Virus record (IMG/VR): IMGVR_UViG_3300047476_002078
Span: 291,875 to 355,874 of that record
Direction: 5' to 3' (one strand)
DNA length: 64,000 nucleotides
Of this stretch, positions 51,422-64,000 are shown piece after piece. A program made the translations under genes and the position numbers. The notes below the pieces were generated by a model that worked only from the letters and a program-made list of their open reading frames with translations, searched no databases and was not told the DNA's origin. Each line of letters begins with the position of its first letter. Position 1 is the stretch's first letter.

Positions 51422-51582
51422 TTATTTGGATTCTTTACTTCGTTATTGAGAATAATAATACCATAGATTACCCATATCATTTTGCTTTCAGAGAAACTTG
51501 CGAAAAATTCGGCAAAGATAATAAAAAAATTTTTAAAGCTGCAAAATATAGATGTGTTAAAGAGATCATTGAATCTCAGTAA
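51418..51582 (+). CDS. possible small protein (54 aa) with hydrophobic N-terminus, not in the ORF track
   Basis: GTG overlapping the previous TGA; VIIWILYFVIE...ETCEKF...YRCVKEIIESQ; fills an otherwise unexplained gap. Confidence 0.4.
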   Translation: MIIWILYFVIENNNTIDYPYHFAFRETCEKFGKDNKKIFKAAKYRCVKEIIESQ

Positions 51583-61500: not shown

Positions 61501-64000
61501 TCCAAGGAACTACTGGAGTCCAAGGCGAAACTGGGGTTCAAGGAACTACTGGAGTCCAAGGCGAAACTGGAGTTCAAGGAGCGACTGGAGTTCAAGGAGT
61601 CCAAGGTGAAACTGGAGTCCAAGGCGAAACAGGGGTTCAAGGAGCCACTGGAGTTCAAGGAACAACTGGCATCCAAGGCGAAACTGGGGTTCAAGGAGCC
61701 ACAGGCGTTCAAGGTGAAACTGGAGTCCAAGGAGTCCAAGGTGAAACAGGGGTTCAAGGAGCCACAGGCGTTCAGGGGATGACTGGAGTCCAAGGTGAAA
61801 CTGGGGTTCAAGGAGTCCAAGGTGAAACAGGCGTACATGGAACTACTGGGGTTCAAGGAGCCACAGGAGTCGCTGGTGTAACAGGTTTTCAAGGTGCTCA
61901 AGGTTTTACAGGAGTAGATGGGAGAACAGGCGTACAAGGAGCCACAGGGGTTCCGGGCGTTATTTTAAATATTTTTGAAACAGGAATTCAAGGAGCTACA
62001 GGTTTTCAAGGAGTCACAGGGGTTCAAGGTAATACTGGAGTTCAAGGAAATACAGGGGTTCAAGGGGTTCAAGGAACCACAGGCGTTCAAGGTGAAACTG
62101 GGGTTCAAGGAGCCACAGGAGTTCAAGGAGCCACAGGGGTTCAGGGAGTCCAAGGTGAAACTGGAGTCCAAGGTCAAACAGGTGTTCAAGGTGAAACTGG
62201 GGTTCAAGGAACCACAGGCGTTCAAGGCGTTCAAGGTGAAACAGGAGTTCAAGGAACCACAGGAGTCCAAGGTGAAACTGGGGTTCAAGGAGCCACAGGC
62301 GTTCAGGGGATGACTGGAGTTCAAGGCGAAACTGGAGTTCAAGGCGAAACTGGAGTTCAAGGAGCTACTGGAGTCCAAGGTGAAACTGGAGTCCAAGGCG
62401 AAACTGGGGTTCAAGGAGCCACAGGAGTCCAAGGCGTTCAAGGCGAAACTGGAGTCCAAGGTGAAACTGGGGTTCAAGGAGCCACAGGAGTTCAAGGAGC
62501 TACTGGAGTCCAAGGTGAAACTGGAGTTCAAGGCGAAACTGGGGTTCAAGGAGCCACAGGAGTCCAAGGCGAAACAGGAGTCCAAGGTGTCCAAGGTCAA
62601 ACTGGAGTTCAGGGAGCCACAGGAGTCCAAGGTGAAACAGGAGTCCAAGGAGCCACAGGAGTCCAAGGTGAAACAGGAGTCCAAGGAGCCACAGGAGTTC
62701 AAGGAACCACTGGGGTTCAAGGTGCGACAGGAGTCCAAGGTGAAACTGGAGTTCAAGGTCAAACAGGAGTCCAAGGTGAGACTGGAGTTCAAGGAGCCAC
62801 AGGAGTCCAAGGAGTCCAAGGTGAAACTGGAGTTCAAGGAGCCACAGGCGTTCAAGGTCAAACAGGAGTCCAAGGTGAAACTGGAGTCCAAGGAGCCACA
62901 GGCGTTCAAGGTCAAACAGGAGTCCAAGGTGAAACTGGGGTTCAAGGAACCACAGGAGTTCAAGGCAATACAGGAGTCCAAGGTGAAACTGGGGTTCAAG
63001 GAACCACAGGAGTCCAAGGTGAAACTGGGGTACAGGGAATCCAAGGCGAAACTGGGGTTCAAGGAGCCACAGGTGTTCAAGGTGAGACTGGGGTTCAAGG
63101 CGAAACAGGAGTTCAAGGAGCCACTGGAGTCCAAGGTGAAACAGGGGTTCAAGGAGCCACTGGAGTCCAAGGTGAAACAGGGGTTCAAGGAGCCACAGGG
63201 GTTCAAGGCGAAACAGGAGTTCAGGGAACCACTGGAGTTCAAGGTGAAACAGGAGTCCAAGGTGTACAAGGAACCACTGGAGTTCAAGGTGAAACAGGAG
63301 TTCAGGGAACCACAGGAGTCCAAGGCGAAACTGGAGTCCAAGGTGAGACTGGTGTCCAAGGTGAGACTGGTGTCCAAGGTGAGACTGGTGTCCAAGGAGC
63401 CACAGGAGTCCAAGGAGCCACAGGGATTCAAGGAACCACAGGCGTTCAAGGAGCGACTGGCGTTCAGGGAGTAACTGGTGCAAGAGGAATTCAAGGTCTA
63501 GTAGGTCTAACAGGAATACAAGGAACCACAGGAGTTCAAGGAGCCACAGGGGTTCAAGGTGAAACTGGGGTACAGGGAGCCACAGGGGTTCAAGGTCAAA
63601 CAGGTGTTCAGGGTGAAACAGGAGTCCAAGGAGCCACAGGAGTTCAAGGCGTTCAAGGAGCTACTGGAGTCCAAGGCGAAACTGGTGTCCAAGGAGCCAC
63701 AGGAGTCCAAGGCGAAACTGGGGTTCAAGGAGCCACAGGCGTTCAAGGAGCCACAGGCGTTCAAGGTGAAACAGGAGTCCAAGGAGCCACAGGAGTCCAA
63801 GGTGAAACTGGGGTACAGGGAGCCACAGGGGTCCAAGGTGAAACAGGAGTCCAAGGAGCTACTGGAGTCCAAGGCGAAACTGGGGTTCAAGGAGCCACAG
63901 GCGTTCAAGGTCAAACTGGAGTCCAAGGCGAAACTGGTGTTCAAGGTGAAACAGGAGTCCAAGGCGAAACTGGAGTACAGGGAGCCACAGGCGTTCAAGG
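55557..64000 (+). CDS. giant collagen-like (Gly-X-Y) fibre protein, at least 2814 aa, 3'-truncated; missing from the ORF track
   Basis: ATG 55557 (AGGAAG upstream). Frame confirmed at 55920, 57660, 59100, 61920 and 63960, with no stop seen in the stretches translated. 62-aa N-domain, then GVQ/GAT/GET/GTT triplets; non-collagen domains at about 57699-58001 and 59112-59507. Confidence 0.93.
55743..64000 (+). repeat. 9-bp triplet repeat array (GG-N GTT/C CAA; GG-N GCC/GAA AC-N) encoding the collagen helix
   Basis: Directly visible; GC content much higher than the rest of the window. Confidence 0.97.

Follow-up and report, generated by a model that had tools for sequence, protein, structure and literature searches.

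A giant collagen-like gene divergent from SgtA-like glycosyltransferase genes in a huge uncultured phage: a candidate module for O-glycosylation of a virion fibre

The window analyzed here is a 64,000-nucleotide (nt) stretch of DNA, positions 291,875 to 355,874 of the IMG/VR virus record IMGVR_UViG_3300047476_002078. At its right end it carries a giant collagen-like open reading frame (ORF) and, on the opposite strand, two glycosyltransferase (GT) genes, one encoding a GT2-family enzyme with tetratricopeptide repeats (TPR), designated GT2-TPR, and the other a multi-domain enzyme, designated multi-GT (Table 1). A first-pass annotation of this DNA had ascribed it to a jumbo phage and had proposed that the two enzymes glycosylate the collagen. 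The source is a huge uncultured phage with a genome of at least 356 kb: the contig comprises 355,874 bp, and a gp6-like baseplate wedge gene of the window has its best relatives in a 485-kb metagenomic phage, the 309-kb Tunturi_5, and Bacillus phage G. A megablast search of positions 43000–55600 against GenBank phages gave no match, and no close DNA relative was thus found among isolated phages.

Organization of the collagen-glycosyltransferase locus

Table 1. Features of the module and of its surroundings, in window coordinates
Feature	Position	Strand	Evidence or remark
gp6-like baseplate wedge gene (context)	43613..46732	+	phrog_6, 8.6e-21; tblastn hits to huge phages
Multi-domain glycosyltransferase (multi-GT), 778 amino acids (aa)	51566..53902	-	Pfam, PHROGs, NCBIfam; start ATG 53902
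GT2-TPR putative protein glycosyltransferase, 492 aa	53904..55382	-	Pfam GT2 and TPR; relative of SgtA, GmaR, and SunS
Divergent spacer, 174 bp	55383..55556		Overlapping sigma-70-like sites, 55464-55493 (+) and 55487-55460 (-)
Collagen-like putative fibre gene, 5' part only	55557..64000	+	ATG 55557, 2814 codons, no stop to base 64000
Non-collagen N-terminal domain, 62 aa	55557..55742	+	Conserved in related phage collagen genes
Globular insert 1, about 105 aa (about aa 711-815)	57687..58001	+	Read from the translation; breaks the triple-helix repeats
Globular insert 2, about 130 aa (about aa 1188-1317), predicted all-beta	59118..59507	+	Read from the translation; breaks the repeats

The collagen-like protein is at least 2814 aa long and is dominated by G-x-T triplets alternating with GVQ, in agreement with the first-pass annotation. 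The nearest upstream in-frame stop codon occupies positions 55554–55556. Since the end of the window coincides with the end of the contig, the gene was cut by assembly and not by biology. The Pfam model Collagen (PF01391, cut-off 27.2 bits) matched residues 1–714 (E = 1e-100, 330 bits) and a second segment, residues 1319–2147 (E = 3.5e-133, 434 bits). The visible part contains 831 G-X-Y triplets, which make up 2493 residues, or 89% of the protein. Most of them are GVQ (358) in alternation with GET (156), GAT (126), or GTT (43); GIQ (43) and GQT (18) were also found. Position Y is occupied almost exclusively by Gln (411) or Thr (381). The protein contains 458 Thr, 11 Lys (2 of them at position Y), and only 15 Pro (0.5% of residues), which bears out the proposed Pro-poor helix, and its net charge is about -177.

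The GC content rises from 33% in the surrounding genome to 50%–54% over the collagen gene. The 18-bp DNA units of the repeat are 67%–75% alike and use Gly, Val, and Thr codons in a mix. Therefore, the repeat appears to be kept at the protein level in the absence of recent perfect duplication, which argues for selection on the protein; the same features, in our view, explain the jump in GC content. ORFs on the antisense strand and in other frames within 55575–63998 were rejected as genes, being shadows of the repeat.

The visible protein consists of the 62-aa N-terminal domain and long G-X-Y runs interrupted by two globular inserts and a few short kinks. The N-terminal domain is 48%–55% identical in the collagen genes of related phages (loci L001/L002/L006, L167, and L168) and visibly conserved in three more (L174, L175, and L177), and it is likely the domain for virion attachment. 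A search with the N-terminal 60 aa against 1.84 billion representatives returned three matches, one to a fragment of this very protein and two, both weak, to repeat proteins, and a word-indexed search with region 1–62 returned none. In the 1266-aa repeat protein P0229, the core motif of this domain (residues 22–48) occurs six times, a weak similarity (E = 8e-08), and the N-terminus of P0229 resembles, by eye, that of a phage tail fibre. Globular insert 1 was found only in near-identical contigs. Neither insert matched a Pfam or NCBIfam family, sequence searches of the PDB gave only chance-level hits (E > 0.1), and single-sequence AlphaFold2 models were unusable, with predicted local distance difference test (pLDDT) values of 41 for insert 1 and 36 for insert 2. 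No BclA_C domain was seen in the available part of the collagen, whose C-terminus lies past the contig end. When IMG/VR was scanned for the missing 3' part with exact 24-mers, nothing matched except the already known end of this contig.

The GT2-TPR enzyme contains a GT2 domain at residues 6–96 (E = 5.9e-23) and matches to TPR_2, TPR_1, and TPR_16 between residues 205 and 354. In an alignment of 19 sequences, the motif D83-A-D-D86 and other residues are invariant, and the DADD motif is aligned with that of SgtA. Its best relatives of solved structure in the PDB are GmaR (E = 1.8e-25), the flagellin O-linked N-acetylglucosamine (O-GlcNAc) transferase of Listeria, and SunS (E = 1e-16), the S-glycosyltransferase of the sublancin peptide. 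Against the SunS family model (TIGR04195, NCBIfam), it scored 68 bits, below the cut-off of 350, as did SgtA itself with 63 bits. In a maximum-likelihood tree of 133 sequences, the enzyme falls into a clade of six metagenomic phage proteins with 100% support. No transmembrane segments were found in either glycosyltransferase of the module.

SgtA of Clostridioides difficile, whose gene lies just upstream of bclA3, is a 358-aa protein with a GT-A domain (residues 1–260) and four TPRs (residues 262–358). Recombinant SgtA transfers beta-O-GlcNAc from uridine diphosphate (UDP)-GlcNAc onto Thr and, less well, Ser of peptides from the collagen region of BclA3, and its acceptors in vitro include peptides with ...GATG... 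(PMC7157674). The first-pass annotation had thus correctly described SgtA as a GT2-TPR-type enzyme encoded beside bclA3. For comparison, protein P0123 was taken as SgtA on the strength of its length of 358 aa and of its two termini, which coincide with the translations of the cloning primers in PMC7157674. In a BLASTP alignment of the phage enzyme with P0123, identity was 40% over 356 aa (E = 7e-77), and the GT-A part was covered as well as the TPR part (residues 1 to 355). The acceptor motifs also agree: SgtA modifies Thr in G-x-T peptides, and the phage collagen offers 381 G-x-T triplets. On these grounds, GT2-TPR is proposed to be the initiating O-glycosyltransferase.

Relative to SgtA, GT2-TPR carries an extra C-terminal region of 135 aa, for which no Pfam or NCBIfam family match was found. 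The multi-GT gene was listed as 51566–53917, but the start codon at 53902 is more likely, with the sequence GAAGGA 8 nt upstream; this ATG lies 1 nt past the TAA stop codon of GT2-TPR, while the two genes overlap by 4 nt in L001. The multi-GT protein had been described as a succession of GT-B, GT2, and GT-B domains. The GT2 domain (aa 167–391) and the second GT-B (about aa 400–778, a complete GT4-type unit with an E-x7-E motif) stand, but the first "GT-B" is a half: aa 1–160 match only the C-terminal half of GT1-type models, that is, the C-terminal Rossmann domain. The 135-aa extension of GT2-TPR (53907–54311, minus strand) also looks Rossmann-type, and together with the first 160 aa of multi-GT (53425–53902, minus strand) it may represent the halves of one split GT-B. 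Multi-GT is proposed to extend the glycan.

The GT operon and the collagen gene are indeed arranged head-to-head across 174 bp, with Shine-Dalgarno-like purine runs before both start codons. The overlapping promoter-like boxes noted in this spacer are present: two sigma-70-like sites overlap on opposite strands, with scores of 11 of 12 (plus strand) and 10 of 12 (minus strand) that rank above all others in 4.4 kb. Sites of this kind, however, are not commoner here than in shuffled sequence (19 found versus 19.6 expected). Since shuffled sequence yields as many, the boxes carry little weight and were rejected as evidence.

Linkage of collagen-like and GT2-TPR genes in bacteria and phages

The linkage of collagen-like and GT2-TPR genes recurs well beyond the window. 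We scanned 80 bacterial loci encoding the GT2-TPR family for ORFs containing uninterrupted runs of 10 or more G-X-Y triplets. Such collagen-like ORFs, with a median Thr share of 0.72 at position Y, were present within 8 kb of the enzyme gene in 49 loci and within 300 bp in 33. Within 500 bp of the enzyme gene they numbered 4.55 per 10 kb, whereas 0.04–0.25 per 10 kb were counted at distances of 2–8 kb, which served as an internal control; collagen-like genes are enriched 20- to 100-fold beside the bacterial homologues. Among 78 viral loci, a collagen-like ORF was found within 10 kb in 27 and within 300 bp in 11, and the density was 1.44 per 10 kb close by versus 0.05–0.29 farther away.

The association is also seen in the window's own clade, where the enzymes are 52%–75% identical to GT2-TPR. 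If the window and the unread ORF of contig P0010 are included, 9 of 10 lineages have a divergent collagen gene upstream. It was read in the window, L174, L001/L002/L006, L168, L175, L177, L167, and L176; the 345-kb contig P0010 contains an internal divergent ORF of 3526 aa that has no Pfam hit and whose sequence could not be read. The collagen of L001 is at least 6593 aa long, running to the contig end, and the genes of L167 and L176 are complete, encoding 497 and 688 aa; the N-terminus of the L176 protein differs from those of the other clade collagens. Multi-GT accompanies GT2-TPR in all 10 lineages, usually adjacent, once 6 kb away, and twice interrupted by an intein. The inteins, found in L168 (2167–5736) and in contig P0010 by matches to Intein_splicing, joined in L168 by LAGLIDADG_3, enlarge the ORF to about 1190 aa. 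Genes beyond the triad are not common to the window and L001, and the other flanks change across the clade. Therefore, the three genes (collagen, GT2-TPR, and multi-GT) travel together. The triad also recurs in the distant phage loci L087, L089, L093, and L108. In Chitinophaga sp. RAB17 (L025:8001–11879), both enzymes form one 1292-aa ORF, GT2-TPR followed collinearly by multi-GT, and some database relatives are GT2-TPR proteins fused to GT1/GT4 or methyltransferase domains. Such natural fusions support a shared pathway for the two enzymes.

Several other observations were made in this clade and its relatives. In L167 (4782–9900, minus strand) and L176 (2–5286, minus strand), the complete short collagen gene is followed by a gene for a 1074- to 1202-aa beta-helix, tailspike-like protein, with a weak Pectinesterase match in L167, which suggests a stalk-plus-enzyme adhesion unit. 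Methyltransferase genes (Methyltransf_24, Methyltransf_11, and Methyltransf_23) are located by the GT operon in L001 (13815–14462 and 16209–16802), L175 (4781–5425), L170 (11446–12096), and L167 (1147–1746); the L001 genes tested have no homologue in the window. Other sugar-related genes also occur in relatives, including a gene for a deoxythymidine diphosphate (dTDP)-sugar isomerase in one of them and genes for GT8/GT9 enzymes. The methyltransferase and isomerase neighbours hint at methylated or deoxy sugars. The distant locus L170, whose enzyme is 38% identical to that of the window, encodes a 930-aa protein (1–2235) that is matched by the Pfam models Collagen, BclA_C, and Beta_helix and located 8 kb from an operon of GT2, methyltransferase, and multi-GT genes (10001–14501). 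This is the only place where BclA_C was seen.

Most assemblies of the clade stop inside the collagen repeat (the window, L003, L005, L001, L168, L174, L175, and L177), and in L175 the gene caller chose an antisense shadow ORF in place of the collagen gene. Giant collagen genes are therefore likely under-counted in phage catalogues, because assemblers break in them and gene callers mis-call them.

A different arrangement was found in many small phages. In L097, a GT2-TPR-GT4 fusion (8696–12472) has an SU10_MCP gene immediately upstream, and GenBank entry MW202524 (L166, 1656–5432) is annotated likewise, with the fusion after the major capsid gene. In these two and about 20 further viral loci, fusions of 720–1100 aa directly follow the major capsid gene, with no collagen nearby. 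They may constitute cassettes through which this enzyme family glycosylates capsids. Phage members of this family thus probably glycosylate different virion proteins, and collagen would be the partner in the window's clade and some others. The window has no capsid gene near the module, and its GT genes are not directly downstream of a major capsid gene.

Proposed fibre glycosylation and alternative explanations

We propose that the three-gene module makes a very long O-glycosylated collagen-like virion fibre in a huge phage, a reading to which we assign a probability of about 0.65. As far as computation can test it, the interpretation offered by the first-pass annotation is supported. According to this scheme, the Pro-poor acidic collagen would trimerise in the cytoplasm into a triple helix. 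The visible part would measure about 0.7 µm (2493 G-X-Y residues × 0.286 nm), and the L001 homologue about 1.7–1.9 µm if triple helix makes up the same 89% share. The soluble GT2-TPR could recognise the repeats via its TPR domain in the cytoplasm of the infected cell, as its homology and linkage suggest, and, in the way that SgtA places GlcNAc on BclA3, could use a nucleotide sugar as the donor to attach a first sugar to the position-Y Thr of G-x-T triplets. The adjacent multi-GT (GT2 and GT4) would add more sugars, to judge from linkage and natural fusions, and in relatives the methyltransferases may cap the glycan. Speculatively, the glycan would stabilise the hydroxyproline-free helix, by analogy with the cuticle collagen of Riftia pachyptila, in which glycosylated Thr at position Y stabilises the helix in place of hydroxyproline (Mann et al. 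1996, as cited in PMC6953826); it may also shield the fibre or make it adhesive.

The 62-aa N-terminal domain would anchor the fibre in the virion, with the baseplate or tail as the probable site. This placement is favoured on indirect evidence, namely the structural block that abuts the module, the beta-helix genes of L167 and L176, and the tail fibre gp29 of Tunturi_5. The block is headed by the gp6-like gene, which lies 9 kb upstream, and it ends at position 51421, convergent with the GT operon.

Several points weigh against the proposed fibre glycosylation. First, a GT4 homologue is adjacent or fused to GT2-TPR in 31 of the 78 viral loci, and a collagen ORF is near only 9 of these. The enzymes located beside capsid genes imply that the family in phages is not limited to collagen substrates. 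Second, one lineage of the clade, L169, lacks the collagen and has a 334-aa Thr/Ser-rich protein as the neighbour. Third, the gene order is divergent in the window and all its clade relatives, whereas in bacteria 32 of the 33 adjacent pairs share a strand. Fourth, a split with 99% support places the window's phage clade on the viral side of the tree, apart from an 85-member Bacillota clade with SgtA. The kinship with SgtA expected by the first-pass annotation thus holds at the level of a full-length homologue; since the enzyme is outside the SgtA clade, it is not an orthologue, and given this split its substrate and sugar could differ from those of SgtA. No nucleotide-sugar synthesis gene was found among the window ORFs scanned, which were not all ORFs of the window. 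Finally, the contig ends before the C-terminus of the collagen is reached. What the sequences show is the genes, their domains, the homology, and the conserved neighbourhood; the sugar, the modified sites, the order in which the enzymes act, and the position of the fibre in the virion are inferred.

The GT operon could instead glycosylate other virion proteins, such as the capsid, tail tube, or tailspike, the collagen being adjacent only through a shared late or structural neighbourhood. The fusions behind the major capsid gene in small phages (L097 with SU10_MCP and MW202524), the collagen-free L169, and the glycosylation of mycobacteriophage capsids by phage-encoded glycosyltransferases (cited in PMC11256854) are in line with this. 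We nevertheless consider it unlikely, as the collagen is the partner kept in 9 of 10 lineages of the clade while other flanks change, the closest characterised homologue, SgtA, works on G-x-T collagen repeats, and no capsid gene lies near the module.

Little credence can be given to the view that the enzymes transfer sugars to host molecules other than proteins (cell-wall polymers, lipopolysaccharide, or capsule), for example in superinfection exclusion, and that the collagen is unglycosylated and stabilised by its own Thr, Gln, and Glu. It leaves the strong recurrent linkage to collagen unexplained, the TPR-bearing GT2 relatives of known function (SgtA, GmaR, and SunS) all modify proteins or peptides, and the glycosyltransferases of the window have no transmembrane segments. 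On the other side, PHROGs class both enzymes as "moron / host takeover" glycosyltransferases, weak matches to polysaccharide GT families were found, and relatives hold the extra sugar genes mentioned above (methyltransferases, dTDP-sugar isomerase, and GT8/GT9). Glucosylation of DNA was rejected: the enzymes are of GT2-TPR and GT4 types with protein-modifying relatives and have no similarity to phage DNA glycosyltransferases.

It is highly improbable that short-read assembly created the giant ORF by expanding the repeat, or by chimeric joins, in what is really a much shorter collagen-like tail-fibre gene. Most clade assemblies do break inside the repeat, and complete homologues of only 497 and 688 aa exist, but the repeat units are only 67%–75% identical in DNA with mixed synonymous codons, the frame is open over 8.4 kb in a genome of 33% GC, L003, assembled from another sample, agrees exactly with the collagen gene over its first 2942 nt, and samples independent of one another yielded giant versions (L001 with at least 6593 aa and the unread 3526-aa ORF inside a 345-kb contig).

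Comparison with known systems places the module closest to SgtA and BclA3. Both enzymes combine a GT-A domain with TPRs, are 40% identical over the full length, share the conserved DxD motif, are soluble and cytoplasmic, and have as a neighbour a collagen-like gene with Thr at position Y. The phage enzyme differs by its separate viral clade and its C-terminal extension, the phage genes are divergent and not tandem, and the context is a phage virion and not a spore. The phage substrate is 10–25 times longer, with G-x-T/G-V-Q instead of G-P-T-type repeats, no BclA_C domain is seen in its available part, and a dedicated three-domain second glycosyltransferase is present. GmaR and SunS share the GT2 domain and the modification of a protein or peptide with the proposed phage system and differ in their substrates.

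BclA of Bacillus anthracis and Bacillus cereus forms a Thr-rich G-x-T collagen filament with a strain-variable repeat length and O-linked oligosaccharides on Thr that include methylated sugars. The phage collagen is likewise Thr-rich, and phage relatives carry methyltransferases beside the GT operon; the likeness considered here is that of the collagen repeats, and the C1q-like BclA_C domain was found only in the distant relative L170. Collagen-like tail fibres of phages and prophages have a trimeric G-X-Y stalk, are encoded in the structural cluster, and are a few hundred aa long. The module shares with them its location in a structural gene cluster and, in L167 and L176, the tailspike-like beta-helix genes that follow. 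In contrast, the giants of this clade range from at least 2814 to at least 6593 aa and are accompanied by a dedicated SgtA-like glycosylation operon.

Mimivirus is another virus encoding both collagen-like proteins and the enzymes that glycosylate them, the latter being proposed in the window. The mimiviral enzymes include the lysyl hydroxylase/glucosyltransferase L230 and R699, and the sugars are hydroxylysine-linked (PMC9546862, PMC5802723, PMC12279948). Since the phage collagen has only 11 Lys, this chemistry does not apply to it, and the window ORFs scanned yielded no hydroxylase domain. The Riftia cuticle collagen shares Thr at position Y and a micrometre-length molecule with the proposed phage fibre, but it is an animal extracellular matrix protein and the enzymes are unrelated. 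A literature search, which was not exhaustive, found no paper tying phage collagen-like proteins to TPR glycosyltransferases, in line with the view that a BclA/SgtA-like module had not been described in phages.

If the proposed fibre glycosylation is correct, phage-encoded O-glycosylation of virion fibres would be common in large phages, beyond the few mycobacteriophages and giant eukaryotic viruses, and the BclA/SgtA glycosylation mechanism of spore collagens would extend to viruses. Glycans of phage fibres would then contribute to host recognition, protease protection, or environmental stability. The system would also offer a way to test whether sugars stabilise extremely long triple helices that lack hydroxyproline, and the pair of GT2-TPR and G-E/A-T-G-V-Q repeats is a compact candidate for producing defined glycosylated collagen-like materials. 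More tentatively, with odds that we put well below even, the SgtA-like GT2-TPR, usually with a GT4 enzyme, could represent a widespread system of phage virion O-glycosylation in which the substrate switches between capsid and collagen. In the window's clade, a single collagen of about 0.7–1.8 µm, among the longest known, would then carry glycans on hundreds to thousands of its Thr residues and act as a sugar-coated "fishing line" for host capture, with the first GT-B split over the two GT genes.

Other genes of the window and of related huge phages

A scan of the window for tRNA genes found none and hence gave no clue to the host. A third glycosyltransferase gene (23009–25249, minus strand), located 30 kb from the collagen gene, encodes a 746-aa protein with two GT2 domains and is followed by a gene for an RNase_T-type exonuclease (25212–25835). 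The segment 11683–15716 contains a gene for a Mom-family protein (PF25680, 1e-10; 13993–14817, minus strand), a family involved in DNA base modification, flanked by genes for a LAGLIDADG_2 homing endonuclease with a helix-turn-helix domain (14814–15716) and a 611-aa DUF7487 protein (11683–13518). In the structural or late region, a 348-aa protein (27493–28539, plus strand) matches the Pfam family Volactin (PF25216) over its full length (3e-70); from the family name, it is presumably actin-like.

In Tunturi_5 (L165, 10391–18222), the annotated tail fibre gp29 is a 1469-aa protein in which short G-A-T/G-P-T collagen stretches alternate with globular repeats. Four paralogous genes, each for a protein of about 285 aa, come after its gene, and the distance from there to a GT2 gene (gp35) is 4 kb.

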